Shown: positions 18,295 to 40,136 of the stretch, piece by piece
Numbering within the stretch: the stretch's first letter is position 1
How the letters are laid out: each line of letters starts with the position of its first letter
Source of the DNA: Epithemia pelagica
Lineage: Eukaryota > Protista > Bacillariophyta
Length of the DNA: 64,000 nt
Direction: 5' to 3'
Assembly (NCBI GenBank): GCA_946965045.2
Contig: OX337240.1
Span: 1,550,001-1,614,000, forward strand
Notes under the pieces: model-generated
Databases searched by the model: none
Seen by the model: only the letters and a program-made list of their open reading frames with translations
What the model was told of the DNA's origin: nothing
Made by a program: the position numbers and the translations under genes

Positions 18295-18602
18295 TGAATT
18301 CGCAATTCGGAATCCGGCCCTTCGTTTTAACAGCAATCGGGAGAAGTTCAATGACATTTCTTATCAGCCATGTATCGGAGAAGGCTCTGTATCGGTGACA
18401 ACCTATAAACCGTACGTACGTCGTCCGCACAGTCTCCCCCATAAAATCTCCCAAAAGCAAATCGTCATGTTGAATGGCCGGCGTGCAAGTGACAGTTGAA
18501 GGTTGGCGGGCGTCCTCTGATCAACACGATTCAAATTCCAGACGCTCGAGAGCGACAGCTCATAAAAACCATGCGAGCAAAATCTTAACGCCAATCGTAA
18601 TC

Positions 18603-18652
18603 GAGTAGCGCATAGCTGTCTCCCATATATGGGAGACAGCTATGCGCTACTC
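18603..18652. repeat. Perfect 50-bp palindrome inside the left end of piggyBac A1
   Basis: GAGTAGCGCATAGCTGTCTCCCATA|TATGGGAGACAGCTATGCGCTACTC, checked base by base; repeated at 28225-28274. Confidence 0.97.
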
Positions 18653-18953
18653 CCTTAACTTTCACTTCAAATAACTTCATCAAAATCCATTTTCATCCAA
18701 ATCTAACTTCATCATTCGATAGATCTTACAATTCTGAACAACTTCATATATGATACTCTACAGTAGAAATGAAGTCATAATGGCGATATTTCGCTTTGAA
18801 AAATTGGCGGTTTCCCTCATTTTTGTCCATTTTCAGTTTCCTTCGCCCGAAGCCCAACTTGGTGCCCTTATATGTTCGGTCTCTCTGAACTGATCGTTGC
18901 AGGACTCTCCATTCTGGAAGTCTATATAGTGAAGAAGACTTGGACGCAAGGAA

Positions 18954-21900
18954 ATGTCGTCTCAACCTTTTCCCACGACCATGAGTCGACACCACCCGAT
19001 TTATCGCAACCGCTCATCGATCAAGACGCAGACCAACCCGTCGTAGCTCAAGCCAGTGACACTCAAACCGCAGCACCTCCAGTCGACAATTCAACAGCCG
19101 GAGAGCCTAATGCCCCGATGGAGCTCCCACCGGAGCTAGAGAGTCTTGTCGCACATTTGCCTGGACGACGACAATCTTCCCGCCCGAGATCAAGATTTTC
19201 ATACGCTAAGCGGAGTTTCGTTGCGATGGACGACTTCTGGATCCATGAAAATTTCAGGGAAGATTTCCGTCGTCGGTTTCGACCCAATCCTACGGACCGT
19301 CACATTCATCTTGTCGGAAAAATTGTGGAATGTCCCTCGAAGAAGAATGACAATATATATGCGATTGTCTGGGACAAACGCAGTATTTCGAGTTTGAACA
19401 TTCCCGACAATTGGATCAAGACACAGTTCACCTCGTCGAAAGCAGTCAAAGCCAAACTTTGTCACTTCATCAAAGTCTACAATCCCGCCAATCTGCCATT
19501 TCAACCATCACAATCGACCCAACCATCCCAATCCCAACAGTTGCAACCAACAGGTCAGTCGGCTTCACAACAAACAAACAACACCTCCACGACAGCATCT
19601 CAACAGAACAATCACACTCAAGACGACAACAATCCTACCAACAACAGCACTGTAGACGACAACAATCCTACCAACAACAGGAATGCACAAGAACCTCCTC
19701 AACCTCCTTCCACAGCAGAGCGTGCACGCCGCCGAGCCGCCATTAGGAATGTACCAGATGCGTCTTTGAGGCGATCTCCTCGTCGTCATTCGACTTCTAC
19801 ATCGAACATGCCATCGACTCAAGAGCGTGCACAGGGTCGTGCTGCACTCATGACTGCACCAGAAGGAGTGCTATCTCCAAGTACTCAAGGAGGTACTCCA
19901 ACTAACGAAGTTGCAACTCGTCTCTTCGGAAGTGCTAGTACTGGTGGCTCCTCCAGGACGACACGACAGCAGCGGGTAAATAACAACAACAATTCCACCG
20001 AGGCCTCCGACGACGAAACAAATAATGACAACTCTTCATCAGACGAAGATGAATCTGGTGGCTATGATTTAGATGTAAACAAAACTGTCCACAGGGATAG
20101 CGATCCATTGTTGGAATACAATGACAGTGACGACGAGGATAACCCTGACGAAGAGAATGCTTCCTCAGGATCGGACAACGAAGATCCCAACAATTCAACA
20201 AATTTGAAGGTGTTGATCGATAATTTACACTTCCACTTCAAGGAAGTTGATTCGTCTGATAATGCTTTCTCATGGGTTGGGCAGGAGCGCAACAACAGAT
20301 CGATGTTTCGTGGTGGCGACGGTCTAAAAGTGGGGATTGCAGATGTATTTCATACTCCCTTTGACTGTCTTCGAGTTGTTGGAGGATTGTCTAAATCCAT
20401 CATTTCGGACATGGCTGCGGCAACGAATCAATATTTCCGCAACAAAATCCGTCCAAACCTAATGGGACGACGAGGATATTTTCATTCTCAGAAATGGAGA
20501 GACGTGACAATGCAAGAAATGACTCGGTTTCTTGGTATCATCTTGATGATGTCCTTGAGACCCGTTGATGGTGGTGGTTACGCAGCTTACTTTTCCAACT
20601 CCAACATGATGTACAGCCTGGGAACTGCAATTCCAACAATGGAAATTGCAGATAGTGCTGGTTGGGCATCGAAATACATGCGCCTTGCTCGATTCCGACA
20701 AATCAGAGGAGCATTCCACCCCGAATTGAAAGAAGCTGGACGGGGAGGTGACAAATGTTACCAACTGCGAAGACTCATCCAGGCTGTAAATTCTGCGTCA
20801 AGACGATCTTTCAAAATTCCACAAGATTTGGCATTCGACGAAGGAGGTATTGGATGCCGTTCGAGGTACTGCCCGGTCAGGCAGTACAACAAGGATAAAC
20901 CAGCCAAGTTCCGCGTTGATTTCTTCATCCTGGCTTCGTCCACTAGCTATGCAATCTTGCATTTGGACGTATATCAGGGAAAGAATGCTACTAATTCATA
21001 CATCCGACACGAGGCACAACGTCTTCCTACAACAATGAAGGCTGTTGTGAATGCGTGTTACGCGCTGGAATTGAACAAGGAAACCCGTGGATTCCGCCAC
21101 TTATCCATGGATAATAGGTATGCCGCTCCACAACTCCTGGTGATTTTGCGAGATCGACTGAAAGTCCTTGCTACTGGTACTGTTCGTGTGAACCGTGTTG
21201 GATGGAACAAGGTTCTCATGGATTTGAAAAAAAACAAAGACCAATCGTGGAACGATGAAACTGGGACATGATGAAGTGAACGGAATCCTAATCGGGCAAT
21301 GGGTAGACTCTAAGGTGGTTAATTTTGTTTCAAGTTACGAGAATGTTGGGACAGGGCAACTACAACGCCAAGTTGGTCAAACGAAGAAAGACTTCAGGTG
21401 CCCCCAAGCATTGATACGATACCAAGACAACATGGGGGGGATTGACCGTGGCGACCAAATGCGGTCACAAATGGGCGGATTTGCCACACATGGCCATTTC
21501 AAGAAATGGTATAAAAAACTGCCCTCGGTATCATGGATATTATGTTGCTCAATGCTCTCATAGCCTGGAACATGTCCGCTGGGGATAGAATTCGTTCAAG
21601 GCGTACAAAGCTTTCAAGACATGCTTTCTACACGTGTGTCGCACAAGCTATGTGCAGTTACGAAGATACAGAAGAGGTTGATGCCTTGGCGCGGCGGACC
21701 CAACAACCTTCACAACCAAGTTGTGAAGATGGACACTTTCCAATCCCTTCGGAGGGCAACAAACGGTTGGCGTGTGCTGTTTGCTTGTTGGAGCACCGTT
21801 GGAAGAAGAAAACATTGGGGATGAAAGGATTGTACTCGAATGTCGGTCAATGTGCCAAATGTGGAATTGTCACACATTTGGTGAATTCCACAGATGAAAG

Positions 21901-22192
21901 AGAGGATGGTTGGAAGATTCATTAGCTACCACAATTCGCAGGTAATACCTGTTTCGAGATTCTGCACTCAATTCAAGGCAGGGAGATATTCATGTGCCGT
22001 CCGGCTGATGGAGGGGACAGCAGATATAAGTACACAACAAAGAAAAATCACCCTCTTGTATTGGATTTGAGAGAGAAACATGGTCTGCCGCCAGAGTTCA
22101 CAAGAAAGAGAAGACGGATTGAAGCCTCGGCCCCTACGGAAGAAGACAACGAGAGTGAGAATGAAAGTGGTGAGGAAATCCATGAATTGTAG
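18954..22192 (+). pseudogene. piggyBac-like transposase (DDE_Tnp_1_7-like), disrupted
   Basis: Motifs FDEGG, MDNRY, MGGIDRGD and a Cys-rich C-terminus. Lesions against families A2/B: 10-bp deletion near 18975, +1 in A8 (21227-21234), -1 in A6 (21513-21518), AAG>TAG at 21923-21925. Confidence 0.9.
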
Positions 22193-24899
22193 AAGCAGCA
22201 TTATATAAGAGACATAGTAAACACAGACGACACAGACTCACCTTGGACAGGTCATTCATAGGTTACTTGTGCCATTGTTGACATGGATCGATGATCTTGG
22301 CTGTGTTGAATGACACAAAAATGAGACCTGCGTTTTAAGGTTAAAACAGCCTCTGTTAAGGCGCTCGCATGGGAGACAGCAAATTCGAGCATCTGGCTGA
22401 CTCCCATAAAATTTATGGGACACAGCTATTTGATACTCCGATAAGCTTAAAACCCGTTCTTTACGATTGGCGTTAAGGGCCCTATCACGGTACCGGTAAG
22501 ACCATCGGCCATGGCACATGAACCGCGGACGAATCATTGTAGACTGTAGACAGAGCGCGTCTTTCCTTCAGTTGTTGTTTGTGCCTTATGTTTCTTCTTA
22601 GGATTGATAGATTGGTAGTGTTTTCGCCCATTTTCTGATTGTAGGGCTTGTCACATCCATGGTTCGAGTTGTCTTCTTGGTTGGGGACGATTTGGTTTCT
22701 TACTCTTACGAGTAGGAGTAGTACTACATCATGAGGCTGATTGTCACCACTTTCTTTCTAGGCTAATGGTCGCTGAGACAAATTCTTAGTGTTTGCTATA
22801 TCTTCTTCAAGGTGAAGACGAGGAGAAGGAGAAGAATAAAGACAAGAGAATCCCTGGTCAAGCAGGACACCACCATTGACCTTCATATTTACCCCTATGA
22901 TAAAATATAGAACAGGAATTCTACCTAGACTAGTATCAGAGTAAAAGGGCTACAAATGAATCAATCATAAAGACTACAAGCAAAATTGGACTGGTGAAAA
23001 GTGAGACGTCGCAACGAGTCCAGAAAATGGGGCTCAAGGGGTGTATGCGAACAAAAACAACAGGGAGGGACTATTGAGATGCTTGTCCTTAGCCCAATCG
23101 CAGCACTGTCTTTCTTGACGTACCTGGGTAGCATGGAAGCTGAAAAATCATGCCATTGCAAGAATTGCCATGGACATGGCCGCTGTACTGGAGGTTTGTT
23201 TGTTTTATGAGTGTCGTGCACCAACACCAACCACCAACGGCAACCGTCATGCACGCTGGGCCGTTCAAACTGATTTGAAATGTGACAAGGAAATGCCGGC
23301 GTGTCCTTTCTGATTTTTTATGGAAAATAGGATATGAATCGAGAAAAAAATCTCCATTGGGGGGACAGTTTGCGGACGACGTACATACGACTAATAGGTG
23401 GTCACCTATACCGAGGGAATTCAAAATTCAAAAGTACTCGTAGAAATCTGGGCGGGTGTATAACTTCTGTCATCCATCCGACATTTTTCTTTTTTCATTT
23501 TAGTTTTAACTTGAAATTATAACTCAGTTTTTTCTCTAAAAGCAGTAATTATAACGTCCATAGCAACTGTCATAACTGGCTTCGCGCGCTTCGCCCTGGC
23601 TTTGGCTTGATACGGAGCACAACGCGAAGAAATCCCACACAGAGATGAACAGTGAACACACACGTGAAACAGAAAAAAACATGCACAAACACAAGACAAG
23701 TGGCAATGGCCCACAACAAGGAAAGCTCTTAGTACATTGACTGCAACTAAAATACAAGCATAGTCAACTCTATATGTATCTAGGTACTCCTCCTATTTGT
23801 TTAGGCTTCCTGGCCCTATCCATTGTATTGTGTCCTTCCTTAGACTCTGATGTCGTCCACACACTGGTTGATTGTCATCTTGTCATTTTTCATCCTTCTT
23901 CTCATTCGGTTGATTGCCGCGTTTACTGATGATCCAGGGGGTAGATCTTGACAGTAGTATTCATGCTATGGTCATTCATTTTGCTGGATTGTTCAATTTT
24001 GTTGCAGCCCCATTGTCATTTCTTGTGGTTCGTCGAAAAGTGAGAAGTGAGACAATTCATGGCTCAAAATACGAGGCGAGGCCGGCGTTCAGATTTCAAC
24101 GATCGAAGGCAGGCTGACGATTTGACATGGCAGGCGCTTTGGAAAAAAACAAGAGGCCAAAGTTGGGCAACGCACGAAGGACAGAAAATATACACCTCTT
24201 GAATCGTTCCCTATTGTTGACCTCCGGGTGACCGGTTCTTACTTGAATTTTGAATTTTGGGATGCCATTCTCCATTCTCTGTTCTCTGTACACTTTCTAC
24301 GAATACAAATTGAAAATTGACTATCCGTAATCCGTAACCACAACCAGCGCAACCATCCAACGCAACAACCAACAACCAACCACCAACCACCATGAACCAT
24401 AAACCATAACCATACCGAAAACCCACCCTCCTTGTCCTTGCCCTTACCCCTTTGCTGGTTACGAATTGTACGAGGGACGAGGGACGAGGGACGAGGGGGT
24501 ATATTATATGCATATCGTCAGTAGTTATCATTATTAGTATTTTAGGTATTTCACACTATCCGTTTACTGTTTGCACAAGTTCCAAGTTCCTGCCTAGTAC
24601 TATGACCTATGACTCGAGACTCGAGCAGAGAGCAACCTAGTGAGAAGTGAGAGAGAGACCTTTTTCAACTTTTAGCCCAGCTTGTAGAGATTTAGACGTT
24701 CTTGAACAAAAATTCATCACACGTCATAAGTCATAAGGTGATGATTTTCTTGGAGATGTTGTTCAACACAACATCACATCATCATAATTCATAATTCATA
24801 ATGGATTGGCTATTGGCTCATTGATCTGGGATTAAGGATTAGGTTGGAGTATTGGAGATTGGAGTAGGTAGTTCGCTTCGGCTCCAAGAAGAACTCTGG

Positions 24900-24940: not shown

Positions 24941-25027
24941 TACTTCACCAGTGAAATTGAAATAGTATTATGTTGTCTATACTATCATCTTTCGTGGACC
25001 TGTTCCTAAATCGTACATGTTCCTTAA

Positions 25028-25518
25028 CGCCATTCGTAAGCGAGTAGCGTATAGCTGTCTCCCATATGAGCGAGACAGCTATACGCTACTCGCTTAACTT
25101 CGACTTTCATTAACTTCATCAAAAACCAAAGTCTGTCAAATCTGACTTCTTCGTTGTAAAGATCTTGAAATTCTGAATAACTTCATATATGATAGTCTAC
25201 AGTAAATACACAGTCATTAGCGTGATATTTCGCTTTGAAAAATTGACGATTTTCCTCAATTTTGTTCATTTCGATCATCCTTCGCCCATGGCCCAACTTT
25301 GTACTCTTATACATATCTACCATTTTGGCCGATCGTTGCAGGATTCTCCATTCCGACGGTCCATATAGTGAAGAAGACGTCCACGAAAGGCAATGTCGTC
25401 TGCAGTTGTACCTACGGAGAACGACGATCACGAGTCCTCACAGCCGAATTCGTCACAGTCACTCCTCGATGAAGATACTGATCCACCCGTCGCACCTCAA
25501 GCCCATACCTATCCAGAT
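25028..25518 (+). mobile_element. piggyBac-like family B, left end only (truncated at the duplication junction)
   Basis: TTAA at 25024-25027, TIR CGCCATTCGTAA, 25-bp-stem hairpin at 25037-25096. Matches 34653-35143, then switches to LRR-gene sequence. Confidence 0.93.
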
Positions 25519-27905: not shown

Positions 27906-28210
27906 TGAATTCGCAATTCGGAATCCGGCCCTTCGTTTTAACAGCAATCGGGAGAAGTTCAATGACATTTCTTATCAGCCATGTATCGGAGAAGGCTCTG
28001 TATCGGTGACAACCTATAAACCGTACGTACGTCGTCCGCACAGAACTCTGTCCTTCTCCCCCATAAAATCTCCCAAAAGCAAATCGTCATGTTGAATGGC
28101 CGGCGTGCAAGTGACAGTTGAAGGTTGGCGGGCGTCCTCTGATCAACACGATTCAAATTCCAGACGCTCGAGAGCGACAGCTCATAAAAACCATGCGAGC
28201 AAAATCTTAA

Positions 28211-31200
28211 CGCCAATCGTAATCGAGTAGCGCATAGCTGTCTCCCATATATGGGAGACAGCTATGCGCTACTCCCTTAACTTTCACTTCAAATAACTTC
28301 ATCAAAATCCATTTTCATCCAAATCTAACTTCATCATTCGATAGATCTTACAATTCTGAACAACTTCATATATGATACTCTACAGTAGAAATGAAGTCAT
28401 AATGGCGATATTTCGCTTTGAAAAATTGGCGGTTTCCCTCATTTTTGTCCATTTTCAGTTTCCTTCGCCCGAAGCCCAACTTGGTGCCCTTATATGTTCG
28501 GTCTCTCTGAACTGATCGTTGCAGGACTCTCCATTCTGGAAGTCTATATAGTGAAGAAGACTTGGACGCAAGGAAATGTCGTCTCAACCTTTTCCCATTG
28601 AGTGGGACGACCATGAGTCGACACCACCCGATTTATCGCAACCGCTCATCGATCAAGACGCAGACCAACCCGTCGTAGCTCAAGCCAGTGACACTCAAAC
28701 CGCAGCACCTCCAGTCGACAATTCAACAGCCGGAGAGCCTAATGCCCCGATGGAGCTCCCACCGGAGCTAGAGAGTCTTGTCGCACATTTGCCTGGACGA
28801 CGACAATCTTCCCGCCCGAGATCAAGATTTTCATACGCTAAGCGGAGTTTCGTTGCGATGGACGACTTCTGGATCCATGAAAATTTCAGGGAAGATTTCC
28901 GTCGTCGGTTTCGACCCAATCCTACGGACCGTCACATTCATCTTGTCGGAAAAATTGTGGAATGTCCCTCGAAGAAGAATGACAATATATATGCGATTGT
29001 CTGGGACAAACGCAGTATTTCGAGTTTGAACATTCCCGACAATTGGATCAAGACACAGTTCACCTCGTCGAAAGCAGTCAAAGCCAAACTTCGTCACTTC
29101 ATCGAAGTCTACAATCCCGCCAATCTGCCATTTCAACCATCACAATCGACCCAACCATCCCAATCCCAACAGTTGCAACCAACAGGTCAGTCGGCTTCAC
29201 AACAAACAAACAACACCTCCACGACAGCATCTCAACAGAACAATCACACTCAAGACGAAAACAATCCTACCAACAACAGCACTGTAGACGACAACAATCT
29301 TACCAACAACAGGAATGCACAAGAACCTCCTCAACCTCCTTCCACAGCAGAGCGTGCACGCCGCCGAGCCGCCATTAGGAATGTACCAGATGCGTCTTTG
29401 AGGCGATCTCCTCGTCGTCATTCGACTTCTACATCGAACATGCCATCGACTCAAGAGCGTGCACAGGGTCGTGCTGCACTCATGACTGCACCAGAAGGAG
29501 TGCTATCTCCAAGTACTCAAGGAGGTACTCCAACTAACGAAGTTGCAACTCGTCTCTTCGGAAGTGCTAGTACTGGTGGCTCCTCCAGGACGACACGACA
29601 GCAGCGGGTAAATAACAACAACAATTCCACCGAGGCCTCCGACGACGAAACAAATAATGACAACTCTTCATCAGACGAAGATGAATCTGGTGGCTATGAT
29701 TTAGATGTAAACAAAACTGTCCACAGGGATAGCGATCCATTGTTGGAATACAATGACAGTGACGACGAGGATAACCCTGACGAAGAGAATGCTTCCTCAG
29801 GATCGGACAACGAAGATCCCAACAATTCAACAAATTTGACGGTGTTGATCGATAATTTACACTTCCACTTCAAGGAAGTTGATTTGTCTGATAATGCTTT
29901 CTCATGGGTTGGGCAGGAGCGCAACAACAGATCGATGTTTCGTGGTGGCGACGGTCTAAAAGTGGGGATTGCAGATGTATTTCATACTCCCTTTGACTGT
30001 CTTCGAGTTGTTGGAGGATTGTCTAAATCCATCATTTCGGACATGGCTGCGGCAACGAATCAATATTTCCGCAACAAAATCCGTCCAAACCTAATGGGAC
30101 GACGAGGATATTTTCATTCTCAGAAATGGAGAGACGTGACAATGCAAGAAATGACTCGGTTTCTTGGTATCATCTTGATGATGTCCTTGAGACCCGTTGA
30201 TGGTGGTGGTTACGCAGCTTACTTTTCCAACTCCAACATGATGTACAGCCTGGGAACTGCAATTCCAACAATGGAAATTGCAGATAGTGCTGGTTGGGCA
30301 TCGAAATACATGCGCCTTGCTCGATTCCGACAAATCAGAGGAGCATTCCACCCCGAATCGAAAGAAGCTGGACGGGGAGGTGACAAATGTTACCAACTGC
30401 GAAGACTCATCCAGGCTGTAAATTCTGCGTCAAGACGATCTTTCAAAATTCCACAAGATTTGGCATTCGACGAAGGAGGTATTGGATGCCGTTCGAGGTA
30501 CTGCCCGGTCAGGCAGTACAACAAGGATAAACCAGCCAAGTTCCGCGTTGATTTCTTCATCCTGGCTTCGTCCACTAGCTATGCAATCTTGCATTTGGAC
30601 GTATATCAGGGAAAGAATGCTACTAATTCATACATCCGACACGAGGCACAACGTCTTCCTACAACAATGAAGGCTGTTGTGAATGCGTGTTACGCGCTGG
30701 AATTGAACAAGGAAACCCGTGGATTCCGCCACTTATCCATGGATAATAGGTATGCCGCTCCACAACTCCTGGTGATTTTGCGAGATCGACTGAAAGTCCT
30801 TGCTACTGGTACTGTTCGTGTGAACCGTGTTGGATGGAACAAGGTTCTCATGGATTTGAAAAAAAACAAAGACCAATCGTGGAACGATGAAACTGGGACA
30901 TGATGAAGTGAACGGAATCCTAATCGGGCAATGGGTAGACTCTAAGGTGGTTAATTTTGTTTCAAGTTACGAGAATGTTGGGACAGGGCAACTACAACGC
31001 CAAGTTGGTCAAACGAAGAAAGACTTCAGGTGCCCCCAAGCATTGATACGATACCAAGACAACATGGGGGGGATTGACCGTGGCGACCAAATGCGGTCAC
31101 AAATGGGCGGATTTGCCACACATGGCCATTTCAAGAAATGGTATAAAAAACTGCCCTCGGTATCATGGATATTATGTTGCTCAATGCTCTCATAGCCTGG

Positions 31201-32104
31201 AACATGTCCGCTGGGGATAGAATTCGTTCAAGGCGTACAAAGCTTTCAAGACATGCTTTCTACACGTGTGTCGCACAAGCTATGTGCAGTTACGAAGATA
31301 CAGAAGAGGTTGATGCCTTGGCGCGGCGGACCCAACAACCTTCACAACCAAGTTGTGAAGATGGACACTTTCCAATCCCTTCGGAGGGCAACAAACGGTT
31401 GGCGTGTGCTGTTTGCTTGTTGGAGCACCGTTGGAAGAAGAAAACATTGGGGATGAAAGGATTGTACTCAAATGTCGGTCAATGTGCCAAATGTGGAATT
31501 GTCACACATTTGGTGAATTCCACAGATGAAAGAGAGGATGGTTGGAAGATTCATTAGCTACCACAATTCGCAGGTAATACCTGTTTCGAGATTCTGCACT
31601 CAATTCAAGGCAGGGAGATATTCATGTGCCGTCCGGCTGATGGAGGGGACAGCAGATATAAGTACACAACAAAGAAAAATCACCCTCTTGTATTGGATTT
31701 GAGAGAGAAACATGGTCTGCCGCCAGAGTTCACAAGAAAGAGAAGACGGATTGAAGCCTCGGCCCCTACGGAAGAAGACAACGAGAGTGAGAATGAAAGT
31801 GGTGAGGAAATCCATGAATTGTAGAAGCAGCATTATATAAGAGACATAGTAAACACAGACGACACAGACTCACCTTGGACAGGTCATTCATAGGTTACTT
31901 GTGCCATTGTTGACATGGATCGATGATCTTGGCTGTGTTGAATGACACAAAAATGAGACCTGCGTTTTAAGGTTAAAACAGCCTCTGTTAAGGCGCTCGC
32001 ATGGGAGACAGCAAATTCGAGCATCTGGCTGACTCCCATAAAATTTATGGGACACAGCTATTTGATACTCCGATAAGCTTAAAACCCGTTCTTTACGATT
32101 GGCG
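28211..32104 (+). mobile_element. piggyBac-like element, family A, copy 2 (defective)
   Basis: TTAA at 28207-28210 and 32105-32108; TIR CGCCAATCGTAA; 10 bp longer than A1. Confidence 0.93.
28576..31824 (+). pseudogene. piggyBac-like transposase, disrupted
   Basis: 775-aa ORF to 30903, then two A-run frameshifts and TAG at 31555-31557, the same lesions as A1. Confidence 0.9.
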
Positions 32105-35017
32105 TTAAGGGCCCTATCACGGTACCGGTAAGACCATCGGCCATGGCACATGAACCGCGGACGAATCATTGTAGACTGTAGACAGAGCGCGTCTTTCCTT
32201 CAGTTGTTGTTTGTGCCTTATGTTTCTTCTTAGGATTGATAGATTGGTAGTGTTTTCGCCCATTTTCTGATTGTAGGGCTTGTCACATCCATGGTTCGAG
32301 TTGTCTTCTTGGTTGGGGACGATTTGGTTTCTTACTCTTACGAGTAGGAGTAGTACTACATCATGAGGCTGATTGTCACCACTTTCTTTCTAGGCTAATG
32401 GTCGCTGAGACAAATTCTTAGTGTTTGCTATATCTTCTTCAAGGTGAAGACGAGGAGAAGGAGAAGAATAAAGACAAGAGAATCCCTGGTCAAGCAGGAC
32501 ACCACCATTGACCTTCATATTTACCCCTATGATAAAATATAGAACAGGAATTCTACCTAGACTAGTATCAGAGTAAAAGGGCTACAAATGAATCAATCAT
32601 AAAGACTACAAGCAAAATTGGACTGGTGAAAAGTGAGACGTCGCAACGAGTCCAGAAAATGGGGCTCAAGGGGTGTATGCGAACAAAAACAACAGGGAGG
32701 GACTATTGAGATGCTTGTCCTTAGCCCAATCGCAGCACTGTCTTTCTTGACGTACCTGGGTAGCATGGAAGCTGAAAAATCATGCCATTGCAAGAATTGC
32801 CATGGACATGGCCGCTGTACTGGAGGTTTGTTTGTTTTATGAGTGTCGTGCACCAACACCAACCACCAACGGCAACCGTCATGCACGCTGGGCCGTTCAA
32901 ACTGATTTGAAATGTGACAAGGAAATGCCGGCGTGTCCTTTCTGATTTTTTATGGAAAATAGGATATGAATCGAGAAAAAAATCTCCATTGGGGGGACAG
33001 TTTGCGGACGACGTACATACGACTAATAGGTGGTCACCTATACCGAGGGAATTCAAAATTCAAAAGTACTCGTAGAAATCTGGGCGGGTGTATAACTTCT
33101 GTCATCCATCCGACATTTTTCTTTTTTCATTTTAGTTTTAACTTGAAATTATAACTCAGTTTTTTCTCTAAAAGCAGTAATTATAACGTCCATAGCAACT
33201 GTCATAACTGGCTTCGCGCGCTTCGCCCTGGCTTTGGCTTGATACGGAGCACAACGCGAAGAAATCCCACACAGAGATGAACAGTGAACACACACGTGAA
33301 ACAGAAAAAAACATGCACAAACACAAGACAAGTGGCAATGGCCCACAACAAGGAAAGCTCTTAGTACATTGACTGCAACTAAAATACAAGCATAGTCAAC
33401 TCTATATGTATCTAGGTACTCCTCCTATTTGTTTAGGCTTCCTGGCCCTATCCATTGTATTGTGTCCTTCCTTAGACTCTGATGTCGTCCACACACTGGT
33501 TGATTGTCATCTTGTCATTTTTCATCCTTCTTCTCATTCGGTTGATTGCCGCGTTTACTGATGATCCAGGGGGTAGATCTTGACAGTAGTATTCATGCTA
33601 TGGTCATTCATTTTGCTGGATTGTTCAATTTTGTTGCAGCCCCATTGTCATTTCTTGTGGTTCGTCGAAAAGTGAGAAGTGAGACAATTCATGGCTCAAA
33701 ATACGAGGCGAGGCCGGCGTTCAGATTTCAACGATCGAAGGCAGGCTGACGATTTGACATGGCAGGCGCTTTGGAAAAAAACAAGAGGCCAAAGTTGGGC
33801 AACGCACGAAGGACAGAAAATATACACCTCTTGAATCGTTCCCTATTGTTGACCTCCGGGTGACCGGTTCTTACTTGAATTTTGAATTTTGGGATGCCAT
33901 TCTCCATTCTCTGTTCTCTGTACACTTTCTACGAATACAAATTGAAAATTGACTATCCGTAATCCGTAACCACAACCAGCGCAACCATCCAACGCAACAA
34001 CCAACAACCAACCACCATGAACCATAAACCATAACCATACCGAAAACCCACCCTCCTTGTCCTTGCCCTTACCCCTTTGCTGGTTACGAATTGTACGAGG
34101 GACGAGGGACGAGGGACGAGGGGGTATATTATATGCATATCGTCAGTAGTTATCATTATTAGTATTTTAGGTATTTCACACTATCCGTTTACTGTTTGCA
34201 CAAGTTCCAAGTTCCTGCCTAGTACTATGACCTATGACTCGAGACTCGAGCAGAGAGCAACCTAGTGAGAAGTGAGAGAGAGACCTTTTTCAACTTTTAG
34301 CCCAGCTTGTAGAGATTTAGACGTTCTTGAACAAAAATTCATCACACGTCATAAGTCATAAGGTGATGATTTTCTTGGAGATGTTGTTCAACACAACATC
34401 ACATCATCATAATTCATAATTCATAATGGATTGGCTATTGGCTCATTGATCTGGGATTAAGGATTAGGTTGGAGTATTGGAGATTGGAGTAGGTAGTTCG
34501 CTTCGGCTCCAAGAAGAACTCTGGCTCTGATCTCTGATCTCTGATCTCTGATCTCTGATCTCTGATACTTCACCAGTGAAATTGAAATAGTATTATGTTG
34601 TCTATACTATCATCTTTCGTGGACCTGTTCCTAAATCGTACATGTTCCTTAACGCCATTCGTAAGCGAGTAGCGTATAGCTGTCTCCCATATGAGCGAGA
34701 CAGCTATACGCTACTCGCTTAACTTCGACTTTCATTAACTTCATCAAAAACCAAAGTCTGTCAAATCTGACTTCTTCGTTGTAAAGATCTTGAAATTCTG
34801 AATAACTTCATATATGATAGTCTACAGTAAATACACAGTCATTAGCGTGATATTTCGCTTTGAAAAATTGACGATTTTCCTCAATTTTGTTCATTTCGAT
34901 CATCCTTCGCCCATGGCCCAACTTTGTACTCTTATACATATCTACCATTTTGGCCGATCGTTGCAGGATTCTCCATTCCGACGGTCCATATAGTGAAGAA
35001 GACGTCCACGAAAGGCA

Positions 35018-38000
35018 ATGTCGTCTGCAGTTGTACCTACGGAGAACGACGATCACGAGTCCTCACAGCCGAATTCGTCACAGTCACTCCTCGATGAAGA
35101 TACTGATCCACCCGTCGCACCTCAAGCCCATACCTATCCAGATTCTGACCAACCTATTGGTAGAGATCATCACCAACCTCATGTTGACAATGATCAAGAT
35201 GATGCTGTCGCTATTTCTGCATCACCACAACCAATACCGAATGCGGATGGCGAGCCACCCGTCGATGCTGAGCGACCTGTTCCACCTCCACCTCCACACC
35301 CAGTCGGAAATATTGCACAAGGACAAGAAACAAATACCGAGACACAAGAACTATTACCCGAAGGGGAAAGTCTTCCGGCCCATTTGCCCGGACGAGGTCA
35401 ATCCACTAAGCCACGTTCCCGATTTAGCTACTCGAAACGGTATCTCGTCTCACCTGACGATTTTTGGATTCATCCAAACTTCCACGAGGAATTTTGTCGT
35501 CGCTTTCGTCCCAACCCTACAAACCGTCCTATAAATCTCGTTGGGAAAATTGCAGAGTGTCCTACGAAGAAGAATGGAAATGTATATTCCATTGTATGGG
35601 ACAATTCAACACTCTCATCTCTCGAGGTTCCACAGAATTGGATCAAATCTCAATTCACCTCCAACTCTACAGTAAAGGAGAAACTTCGTCAATGTATTCA
35701 AGAGTACAACCCAAGTCAACATGGCCGGGGAAACCAACCATCTCAAACACAACAATCGCAACAAACAAGCCAGTTGCAAACGCACCAACCAAACCAAACT
35801 TCTGTGGTGGTGACTCAACAGAACAATTCTCTGAACAACAACAATGCACAAGCTCCTGTTGTTCAGCATCGCGGATCAACACAACAGCCTCCACCTCCTT
35901 CCACAGCAGAGCGCGCACGACACCGAGCCGCAATCAGGAATGTTCCGGAATCTTCTCTTAGACGCTCTCCTTGCCGTCATTCTCGTCGCAGCTCAACATC
36001 CAACCCGCCATCCACTCAAGAAAGAGCCCAAGGGCGGGCAGCTCTAATAACTGCTCCTAACGGCGGCCCTTCTCCGTCAGAAAATGGGAACGACGAAAAC
36101 AACGATACTCCAACCACCCAAGTTCCAACCCGTCTTTTCGGCAGTACAAGTACTTCTGTCTCTACAAGAGCTACGGCAGCTGCACGGCGACAGCGTCGAC
36201 AGGAAGAAAACACAGAAGACGATGCATCAGAGAATGGGGAAGATTCTTCGTCTGACGAGGACGACAATGGTGGGTATGAACTGGATTTCAATGCCACAGT
36301 TGATAGGACTGTCGATCCCTTAGATGACTATGACGACAATGATGACAATAATGAAGACGAAGAAAATGTTGTCCAAAGCGACGACTCGGAATCAACAGAC
36401 GACGACGATGATCCCAACAATTCAACAAATCTGAAAGTGCTCATAGACAATCTACAATGGCACTACCGGACCGTTGATCAGTCAGACAGTGTTTTCGACT
36501 GGGTGGGACAAGAACGACACCATCGATCAATGTTTCGAGGAAGTGATGGGTTGAAGGCCGGTGTTGCAAATTCGTTCAATACTCCCTTTGATTGTTTGCG
36601 CAATGTTGGTGGACTTTCGGAGTCTCTGATTTCGGACATGGCAGCAGCAACCAATCGTTACTTCCATCAAAAAATCCGTCCTAAGCTCATGGGTCGGCGT
36701 GGTTATTTTCACTCACAGAAGTGGAAGGATGTCACTATCCAAGAAATGACAAGGTTTCTTGGTATCATCTTGATGATGTCGTTGAGACCACTCGACAGTG
36801 GTGGTTATGCATCCTATTTCAACACCTCCAATCGAATGTACAGTCTTGGCACTGCCATCCCATCGGTAGAAATTCTCGATAGTACCGGCTGGGCGTCTAA
36901 GTACATGCGTTTGGCTCGGTTTCGCCAAATAAGGGGAGCCTTCCATCCCGAATCAAAAGGCGCCGCACGTGGGGGGGACAAATGCTACCAGTTGCGTAAA
37001 CTTATACAGGCAGTCAATGCAGCTTCGAAGAGGTCTTTTATCATTCCTCAAGATCTTTCGTTTGATGAAGGTGGAATTGGTTGTCGGTCTAGATACTGTC
37101 CAGTGCGTCAGTACAACAAGGACAAACCTGCCAAATTCCGAGTTGATTTCTTTATTTTGGCGTCGTCTACAAGTTACGCCATTTTACACATGGATGTGTA
37201 TCAAGGCAAAAATGCCACGAACTCCTACATCAGGCATGAAGCACGCCGCCTTCCTACTACGATGAAGGCTGTTGTTAACGCTTGCTACGCGTTGGAGCTA
37301 AACAAGGAGACCAATGGCTTCAGGCATTTGTCTATGGACAATAGATATGCGGCACCACAACTTCTTGTGATTCTACGAGATCGCCTCAAAGTTCTTGCCA
37401 CCGGAACAGTACGAGTCAACAGGGTCGGTTGGAGCAAATCACTGATGAATCTGAAAAAAACAAAAACCAACCGAGGCACAATGAAGCTTGCACATGACAA
37501 AGTAAATGGTGTTATCATTGGACAATGGGTTGACTCCAAAGTTGTTAACTTTGTGTCGACATACGAGAACATTGGTACCGGACAAGTGCAACGTCAAGTG
37601 GGCCCAAACAAGGAAAGCTTCAACTGCCCACAAATGCTGATTCGATACCAGACTAACATGGGTGGAATCGACAATGGTGACCAAATGAGGTGCCATATGG
37701 GCGGTTTTGCCACCCATGTCCACTTCAAGAAATGGTATAAGAAAGCCGGTCTGGGGATCATGGACATCATGCTACTGAATTCGTTCATTGCATGGAACAC
37801 GTCCGCTGGTGACCGGGTACGGTCCAGACGCACGAAGCTATCAAGGCACGAGTTCTACACAGTCGTCGCTCAGGAGATGTGCAGTTATGTGCATGCAGAC
37901 GAAGTTGATGCATTGGCTCGACGGACTGGAGTACAGAGAAACACTGCATGCGAGGATGGTCACTACCCGGTTCCCATTGATACTTCGAAACGGATGGGAT

Positions 38001-38469
38001 GTGCCGTTTGTTTGTTGGAGCATCGGTGGAAACGTAAGGAGATTGGAATGAAAGGTCTGTTTTCAAATGTAGGCCAATGTGCCAAGTGCGGAATTGTGGC
38101 ACACCTGGTGTCATGTAAGGACGACCGGGAGGACGGATGGAAAATTCATAAGCTACCACAATTCGCGAACCATACTTGCTTTGAAATACTCCATTCGACA
38201 CATGGCAGGGAAATGTTTATGTGTCGTTCAACAAGTGGCGAGGATGGCAGATACAAGTACACAACAAAAAAAACCACCCTTTTATAATGGCCTTGCGAGA
38301 AAAGCATGGTTTGTCCCCAGAATACACAAGGAAAAGACGACGCAGTACTGGCAGTGAAAACATGCAAGAGGACAATGAGGAAGCCAATGACAACAACGGA
38401 AACGAGAACGACAACAACGACGACACTGAAAGCAATGAAGACGAAACCACCAATATCCATGAACTGTAA
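35018..38469 (+). CDS. piggyBac-like DDD transposase with long N-terminal extension
   Basis: 1089-aa ORF (35018-38287) with SFDEGG, MDNRY, MGGIDNGD and CAVC...CAKC...H...CFEILH. One extra A in the run at 38266-38273 would restore the A-family-like tail KKNHP...RKRRR...IHEL ending at 38469. Confidence 0.9.
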
Positions 38470-38535
38470 AGACAATACTAATCTAAGTAAAGAAGAGAGC
38501 ATTTCGTAGTTCTCAGTACATGTTTAGTAGGCTAG

Positions 38536-39166
38536 TTAGGCATCGCCATCAGTGGGAGCAGGTCGGAAACCCACATACTGTTCATCCGTGTTTTCATTTG
38601 GAAAGTTTTCACGGACGAAATCTACCAAACAATCCGGCAGTGGAACTCGGTAACCACGTCCAAGGGGACCGTGAAGCTTATTCGACAAGCGCCGATATAG
38701 CTGGTATCGAATTGCACGGTTCGACTCACCTTTGTTTCTGAGATGCATGGCGATTTCATGAATGTAGCTAAGGTGTTCGACAACAACGCAAGGGTTTTGC
38801 TGGCAGATAGAGCACACGTTTTCCCAGTACATGTATCCATGCGATTTCGTGCGCGGCATGTTGTTGTTTAGCTCGTAGAGAATCTTCTCGATGCTTTCGG
38901 GGCAAGCATATTCAATGGGAATGTACCTTGTTTCGGTAGCTTCAGAAGTCTCGTCGATGACTATTCCCTGTTCCCCAGTTACCAACACTTGCGATTTCTT
39001 GAGGGTAAAGGGAACCATCACGCCACTGCGTGGAACACTGTTGTCGTCGAGGGTCGACTCTGCGATTTCGACGGAATCAATGAGATCTGCGAAACAAGGT
39101 GAGGTGAGAATGAAGAAAAAGGACTTCATTGACTGAATTCTTGAAAGAAAAGAACTCACCGTCCAT
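38536..39166 (-). CDS. Passenger/accessory protein resembling the P2X7 C-terminal (ballast, P2RX7_C-like) domain
   Basis: ORF 38536-39207; predicted ATG at 39166 and GT-AG intron 39087-39159 give 185 aa. CSICQQNPC...NRAIRYQLYR...GPLGRGYRVPLPDCLVDFVRENFP...QYVGF resembles the human P2X7 C-terminus (RHCAYR...LPSCCRWRIRKEFP...QYSGF, from memory). Confidence 0.75.
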
Positions 39167-40136
39167 GATCTTCCGATAGGAGGTTGTAGATTGATCGTAG
39201 CCTTCAATGAATGAGGGATGAATGAGGGGAAAAAAAGATACTGTGGTCATTGCTTAACACGGTTCTGTTAGTGTTTTAAGAAGGGAGACAACTAAGCGAG
39301 TAGCATGTTGTCTCCCATAAACTTTATGGGAGACAACTATATGCTACTCGCAGAAGCTTAACACCCGTTCTTTACGAATGGCGTTAATCCACTCATTCTT
39401 GACGGTCCACAAAACTCTTTGTACGACCCAGTGTTCTGCTTTTCGATCGAGGACCGACGACTCAACCCTACACGGAACCTCTCTTCGTATCTCTATGGGT
39501 GGATGTATGTCTAGCATCCTTCAAAGACGTAGAGTATACCGAGAAAGAGCCATGTTGTTAAGGTGATGAGTTGATACAGCTTTTCGCAGAATGAAACGAT
39601 CAATGGTCCTCCTTGGCATTGGACGGTGCCACCAGAGAACATAGCAGATAACATCCCTCTCCCCTAGTAGACAGTGGCGTCTTGCATCTTGCTCCGAAAG
39701 CACCAAAACAGGAGAAACGGAAACAACTTTCTGGCGATGATGGCACTTTTTTTCTCACTCATGTAGAGTAGACGTTCCTATCTCAAGATGCCTATTTTCT
39801 CACCATGTTCCAAAAAGTCGTTGGAGAATGCCGACGAGACGTTGCTGGATACGGAGAAAGGCGTTACATCCAGATTTTATCCTCGCGATACTCTTGGACT
39901 TTGTCTTGTCATTACGATATGGAAGCAAGACAATTTCAGCACTTGGCAACATATGGAATACCACACTTAGATAGTCCCATGGTCTATCCCACTCTTGATA
40001 CTAGCTAGTGCAGCATAATAGGAATAGGAGTATAATATACAATAGGGTTGTAGCTATTGAAGCGAGAACTCCCCTAGCAAGAGTCCAGTCGCAGATCACG
40101 AGTTATCCCCCAAGTCATTTTGATGGAGTCATCTTA

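Follow-up and report, generated by a model that had tools for sequence, protein, structure and literature searches.

Comparative evidence for a conserved ballast-like second gene in a recently mobile diatom piggyBac element

In a 64,000-nt stretch of Epithemia pelagica DNA, hereafter the window, we identified a full-length piggyBac element of 4,739 bp (positions 34649 to 39387) that is bounded by TTAA at both ends and carries two convergent genes, one for a transposase and one for an accessory protein (Table 1). The accessory gene (39166 to 38536, minus strand) is located inside the terminal inverted repeats (TIRs) and lies tail-to-tail with the transposase ORF, from which it is separated by 248 bp. 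An earlier sequence-only reading of this DNA had described the same arrangement, and the coordinates, the TIRs, and the DDE_Tnp_1_7 match of the transposase all agree with that description. The TIRs are perfect over 12 bp (CGCCATTCGTAA), or over 16 nt at 100% complementarity when TTAA is counted, and begin with CGCC, as opposed to the CCC of classical piggyBac; besides, each end of the element contains a subterminal palindrome of 25 to 27 nt. The DDE_Tnp_1_7 match occupies the C-terminal half of the transposase and covers profile positions 11 to 349 of 349. A Kolobok-type transposase and Kolobok-type termini are both absent from the window element, whose transposase is of the DDE_Tnp_1_7 type and whose termini read CG...CG and not 5'-RR...YY-3'; a Kolobok identity was thus rejected on both counts, i.e., wrong transposase and wrong termini.

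Table 1. Features of the two-gene piggyBac element (window positions) and remote two-gene contexts. L001 to L005 are close homologues of the accessory gene.
Feature	Position	Strand	Basis
Left TTAA target-site duplication	34649..34652	.	Window sequence; empty-site contig (runs X1, X2)
Left terminal inverted repeat, CGCCATTCGTAA	34653..34664	+	Inverted repeat I8, 100% complementary with 39372-39387
Left subterminal palindrome, 25-nt arms and 10-nt spacer	34662..34721	.	I3, I4; inverted repeat of it at 39325-39351
piggyBac transposase, 1,089 aa, uninterrupted	35018..38287	+	Pfam DDE_Tnp_1_7 (PF13843), E = 1.5e-47
Accessory exon 2, 182 codons and TAA	38536..39086	-	Homologues; purifying selection
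Ballast/KolX-like C-terminal module, 101 aa (predicted)	38539..38841	-	55-sequence alignment, P2RX7_C in relatives, P2X7 profile match, AF2 model
Accessory N-terminal region, ~81 aa, acidic, predicted beta-rich	38842..39084	-	Conserved among six diatom copies
Intron, 73 nt, GTGAGT...TTTCGCAG, ending CAG (predicted)	39087..39159	-	GT..AG; same position in L001-L005
Accessory exon 1, coding part ATGGACG, probable start codon	39160..39166	-	ATG 7-16 nt 5' of donor kept in all five lineages
Right subterminal palindrome	39296..39351	.	I4, I12, I17; between TIR and accessory gene start
Right terminal inverted repeat	39372..39383	-	Inverted repeat I8
Right TTAA target-site duplication	39384..39387	.	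Window sequence; empty-site contig (runs X1, X2)
Remote two-gene contexts	L006 (Seminavis robusta); L007/L008, L009, L010, L011, L013 (metagenomic)		Convergent with transposase

The minus-strand ORF of the accessory gene is open throughout from 38536 to 39207. Its product contains CSICQQNPC, NRAIRYQLYR, GPLGRGYRVPLPDC, VRENFP, and QYVGF, so that the CxxC-x3-PC and NRAIRYQLYR motifs and those downstream of them are present as had been read from the letters. The same reading had considered a 73-bp intron plausible. Indeed, a putative intron occupies the homologous position in five other copies (L001 to L005; 56 to 99% protein identity), all of which keep GT...AG; the intron sequences themselves are unrelated among these copies and differ in length. 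The probable start ATG at 39166 sits 7 nt upstream of the GTGAGT donor, and in three copies (L001, L003, and that of the window) exons 1 and 2 can be joined in frame only if the intron is removed. Comparison of the copies thus favors the predicted 73-nt intron and a predicted product of 185 amino acids. We preferred this model over one of 213 amino acids starting from an ATG at 39250 (MTTVSFF...), which is less likely because the upstream ORF is broken in L003 to L005.

Upstream of the gene, the stretch that separates the start codon from the right palindrome (window 39167 to 39260; approximately 130 to 230 nt inside the right end in L001 to L005) opens with a conserved motif (ATGAC..GTATCTTTTTT). 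This motif can be translated as a pseudo-ORF (MTxVSFF), which three of the lineages interrupt; the stretch is probably a promoter or 5'-UTR rather than coding sequence. As a separate observation, a small run from 2024 (X4) yielded three contigs of 151 nt at a depth of 2 to 4 within 38614 to 39081. All three fall within exon 2 of that gene, with nothing real from the transposase, and would be a hint of accessory gene transcription if X4 is RNA.

We further compared five diverged copies of the gene from the same assembly. Nonsynonymous differences were few (pN, 0.11 to 0.27) versus saturated synonymous differences (pS, 0.65 to 0.99), and dN/dS was 0.04 to 0.10 where dS could be estimated, with values of ≤0.1 in both the N- and the C-terminal halves. 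Judging from these substitution patterns, the accessory ORF is a real gene under purifying selection.

The five close homologues (L001 to L005) come from one ENA assembly, which also contains a protein identical to that of the window (P0171), and every one of them lies tail-to-tail with a DDE_Tnp_1_7 gene. More remote homologues (30 to 42% identity) were convergent with a piggyBac transposase in six of the seven contexts looked up, including that of Seminavis robusta (L006), so that the two genes converge in 11 of the 12 contexts in all. Whether homologues recur inside piggyBacs in this orientation had been raised by the sequence-only reading, and they do so both within the assembly and beyond it. 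Furthermore, the window copy, L001, L003, L004, L005, L006, and L011 have TTAA at both ends and unrelated flanks, and the TIR start of the window copy recurs as CGCCA(T/A)TC in the other six. The sole exception among the contexts examined (L014:433-1458) encodes a 341-aa metagenomic protein with two tandem ballast-like modules, and its 3.5-kb contig contains no piggyBac transposase. We also observed that amino acids 56 to 284 of the window transposase (35183 to 35869) show weak but significant conservation in distant two-gene piggyBacs (L006, L009, and L011), with 20 to 27% identity and E values of 1e-8 to 1e-11.

The catalytic region of the transposase and the accessory protein gave congruent maximum-likelihood trees, with the topology ((B,L001),(L002,L003)),(L004,L005), in which B is the two-gene element of the window (34649 to 39387). 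This congruence implies that the accessory gene diverged together with its transposase and was not repeatedly captured. A one-off capture was rejected, since the pairing recurs and the trees agree; diverged copies keep the gene, although related elements without it are found nearby. On this comparative footing, the accessory gene is shown to be a long-standing and stable part of a piggyBac clade.

The elements without the gene are two essentially identical piggyBac copies in the window (18585 to 22476 and 28207 to 32108), which we designate A. The catalytic region of the A transposase is 82% identical to that of B, and the A transposase contains two frameshifts and two stop codons. In the tree it is nested inside the gene-carrying clade, so that A is most readily understood as a decayed descendant of that clade in which the accessory gene was lost. 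An element copy can therefore exist without the accessory gene, and the A copies, whose transposases are frameshifted, could be mobilized in trans. Besides, a fragment at 25024 to 25518 reproduces the first 495 bp of B at 100% identity, i.e., its left end and the first 42 transposase codons. This fragment and the duplicated A copies together point to local segmental duplication.

B itself is a recently mobile piggyBac. A near-twin copy (L001) resides at another locus with unrelated flanks and is 98.2% identical over the full length, with a transposase 97% identical to that of the window; an apparent 8-bp identity between the flanks of the two copies is really 6 of 8 bases and was attributed to chance. 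Different contigs carry at least nine protein variants of this family, of which eight are full length. Moreover, four public runs contain this DNA and behave as genomic (contigs of up to 443 kb), and the DNA runs X1 and X2 include an empty-site contig that joins 34651 directly to 39384. Its depth was 162/140 versus 383/318 for the flanks, or approximately 40% of flank depth, indicating that the insertion is polymorphic or heterozygous. The empty allele reads ...CATGTTCCTTA+GTTCC+TTAATCC and is 8 bp longer (tandem GTTCCTTA) than the product of a precise excision; the extra 8 bp could be a footprint left by excision, or else an indel between haplotypes that is unrelated to it.

The accessory protein of approximately 185 amino acids is composed of a C-terminal module of approximately 100 residues and a lineage-specific, acidic N-terminal region. 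The sequence-only reading had likened its motifs to the ballast domain at the end of the P2X7 receptor, a likeness that holds for the family and fails to reach threshold for the window copy alone. The latter scored 12.8 bits (E = 0.11) against Pfam P2RX7_C (PF20478), below the gathering threshold of 23.5 bits, and its match spans only profile positions 137 to 192 of 192; searches of PDB sequences with the single sequence and with a five-sequence profile gave no match. When a profile built from five diverged copies was searched exhaustively with HMMER, 713 cluster representatives were retrieved at E ≤ 1e-3, 71 of them at E ≤ 1e-10, and nearly all of these matches were limited to the last ~95 residues, i.e., the C-terminal module. 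An alignment of this module from 55 sequences (A3) has the signature C-x2-C-x3-PC ... N-x2-IR-x2-LYR ... HG-x-LG-x-G-x-R-x2-LP-x-CV ... IR-x2-(F/Y)P ... YVGF, and four cysteines (C-x2-C-x4-C ... LP-x-C; module positions C10, C13, C18, and C71) show little or no variation across the 55 members. P2RX7_C was matched at E ≤ 0.01 by 32 of the 55 relatives (best, 4.6e-7), one of which (P0123) exceeded the cutoff with 26.2 bits. Among PDB sequences, the A3 profile matched residues 539 to 593 of human P2X7 (9e3m_A) with an E value of 1.7e-5. By the HMMER alignment, P2X7 R546, Y550, L569-P570, C572, and R578 all have retained equivalents in the module.

Structure prediction agrees with this relationship. 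An initial AF2 model (160 aa; five-sequence alignment) had a pLDDT of 63 and returned only noise from Foldseek; it was replaced by a model of the 101-aa module from the 55 sequences, with a mean pLDDT of 82 and a pTM of 0.68. In a Foldseek search of the PDB with this model, P2X7 accounted for nine of the ten best chains, with E values that are not significant (0.69) and a TM score by query of 0.53. VIA-align superposed model residues 6 to 96 on P2X7 residues 475 to 595 (Z, 8.3; 88 aligned residues; 22% identity), and its top 14 rows were all P2X7. The nearest ESM Atlas cluster, 99% of whose members carry PF20478, was annotated as P2X purinoceptor 7-like (TM, 0.68 over 89 residues), and the second nearest was P2X7 itself (TM, 0.62). 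The profile comparisons and the predicted fold identify the module as a remote homologue of P2X7 475 to 595, in the C-terminal half of the KolX/ballast domain, with similarity at the family level, and not as a Pfam-level member. The dinuclear zinc site of the ballast would not be intact in it, as only four of approximately seven ballast cysteines are kept, and the module may or may not have retained the guanine-nucleotide pocket.

The N-terminal ~80 residues were poorly modelled (pLDDT below 56) and had no match in Pfam or the ESM Atlas. ESM Atlas feature searches with this region and with the whole protein gave only noise-level scores of approximately 0.5. In the exhaustive search, the region was shared by only three other clusters (P0006, P0042, and P0104).

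We are confident of the identity of the element and its gene, namely, a two-gene piggyBac with a ballast-like partner. As for the best explanation as a whole, i.e., a two-gene piggyBac clade with an accessory subunit that aids transposition, we lean modestly in its favor, and the particular mechanism of a zinc-stabilized transposase partner is offered tentatively, as a possibility rather than an expectation. According to this mechanism, the protein would be made by the element for its own transposition and, as a zinc-stabilized accessory subunit, would bind the transposase and help or tune transposition, either as a cofactor or as a regulator. Docking might take place on the conserved stretch (amino acids 56 to 284) in the long N-terminal extension of the transposase. 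Furthermore, since the right palindrome lies between the TIR and the gene start, the accessory promoter would have to overlap it, and feedback from transposase binding would be possible.

Alternatively, the protein might be a passenger that acts on the host, by countering silencing or defence or by affecting signalling, and that is kept because it raises the survival of the element. Strong purifying selection and long persistence show a benefit to the element and not a catalytic role, and the module of L014 occurs without a neighboring transposase, both of which would suit a passenger. However, Kolobok, a DDE superfamily unrelated to piggyBac but with the same TTAA target, has this module as its accessory protein (PMC9587614), and a role in transposition explains this more easily; besides, the predominance of the convergent arrangement suggests coregulation with the transposase. 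We consider the passenger explanation unlikely.

More doubtful still is palindrome binding, one of the roles that the sequence-only reading had put forward. The protein would then be a DNA-end factor comparable to the Myb-like partner of Harbinger, binding the subterminal palindromes or the TIRs and recruiting the transposase. Palindromes are conserved at both ends, the 5' end of the accessory gene adjoins the right one, and a zinc-binding structure could be built from the four conserved cysteines. Nevertheless, with a pI of 5.13 the protein is acidic overall (N-terminal half, 4.48; C-terminal module, 6.45), it had no match to a DNA-binding family in Pfam, and its only structural relative, the P2X7 ballast, has been described without a DNA-binding role (PMC9859053). 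An overall pI of 5.1 counts only slightly against DNA binding; as predicted from its sequence, the accessory protein is unlikely to bind DNA in a sequence-specific manner. It is the acidity and the lack of a DNA-binding signature that led us to rank protein-protein action above palindrome binding.

A stronger form of the transposase partner, in which this piggyBac clade is truly two-component, cannot do without the ballast-like protein as its second subunit, and has its activity gated by zinc or guanine nucleotide, strikes us as improbable, although, if true, it would offer a first clue to the function of the enigmatic P2X7 ballast. In that case, the module, which two unrelated TTAA-inserting superfamilies (piggyBac and Kolobok) have recruited, might serve specifically in the capture of TTAA targets or in repairing the TTAA site after excision. 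Finally, an ORF that is open by chance, a pseudogene in decay, or a host gene fragment captured once would be in keeping with the weak Pfam match of the single sequence and with the neighboring A elements that lack the ORF, but this reading is refuted, on comparative sequence data, by five diverged intact copies each within a piggyBac, by the low dN/dS and the congruent trees, by the 713 related clusters, and by the nesting of A among gene-carrying lineages, where the gene was lost.

piggyBac, one of the major tools of genome engineering, is taught as consisting of a single gene. The strong selection by which a widespread clade in algae has maintained a second one suggests a cofactor or a layer of control that has gone unstudied. 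The ballast module is also present in human P2X7 and in the KolX protein of Kolobok, where it is likewise unexplained, and an active, polymorphic, and compact two-gene diatom element is a workable system for asking what the ballast fold does.

With regard to known systems, the element resembles PIF/Harbinger in that a second element-encoded protein is conserved beside the transposase. The partner protein of Harbinger is required for transposition. The proteins of the two systems are unrelated, and the Harbinger partner is basic, Myb-like, and DNA binding, whereas the accessory protein described here is acidic. With the P2X7 ballast (PF20478; PDB 6u9v, 6u9w, and 9e3m), the module shares the predicted fold of residues 475 to 595 and the motifs N-x3-R-x3-YR, G, LP-x-C, IR-x2-FP, and Y-x-GF. 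Unlike the ballast, it belongs to a predicted stand-alone soluble transposon protein and not to the tail of an ion channel, and it lacks ballast residues 393 to 474 and several of the cysteines. The P2X7 ballast binds guanine nucleotide and zinc, with A567 and L569 among the GDP-contact residues, and a DNA-binding role is not mentioned for it (PMC9859053).

A closer precedent is KolX, the accessory protein of the TTAA-duplicating DDE transposon Kolobok, which was reported to have the ballast fold in the Kol0 lineage, with similarity to P2X7 residues 476 to 595; the P2X7 tail was proposed to derive from it (Kojima & Bao 2022, Mob DNA 13:24, PMC9587614). The sequence-only reading had placed KolX in the ballast family, and this is correct (PMC9587614). 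The window element has the ballast-type accessory module and the TTAA target in common with Kolobok and nothing else. Its transposase is of the DDE_Tnp_1_7 (piggyBac) type and its termini are CG...CG, in contrast to RR...YY; KolX keeps the seven cysteines of the dinuclear zinc site, whereas the accessory protein retains four and corresponds only to the C-terminal part, and its N-terminal region is unrelated to that of KolX.

The sequence-only reading had regarded the element as an undescribed system, with the reservation that the claim would fall if the pairing were already catalogued. It is: Data S6 of Kojima & Bao 2022 lists piggyBac-2_GrCh_2p from the red alga Gracilariopsis chorda and piggyBac-14_PI_2p from the oomycete Phytophthora infestans (PMC9587614). 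Beyond that paper, the literature that we searched contained no report of a KolX-like piggyBac pairing. By hhalign, the A3 profile matched the C-terminal 88 residues of piggyBac-2_GrCh_2p with a probability of 99.0 and an E value of 3e-18 (31% identity over 83 columns). The window family shares with the published piggyBac KolX-like proteins the motif C-x2-C-x3-PC ... HG-x-LG-x-G-x-RV-x-(L/I)P-x-C ... R-x2-(F/W)P ... Y(V/M)GF, and, as in them, most of the seven cysteines conserved in the ballast are missing from it, four being kept. Unlike the two published families, those found here are hosted by a diatom-like genome, Seminavis robusta, and marine metagenomes. Because such piggyBacs are already in print, the value of the present analysis is the depth of evidence and not discovery: Kojima & Bao devoted one sentence and two sequences to them, whereas the fixed gene order, the conserved intron, the selection on the gene, the co-phylogeny, the N-terminal region, and the breadth of the family are absent from that work and are shown here, together with recent mobility. 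Thus, the diatom-lineage element is a new member of an already published, uncharacterized type of piggyBac.
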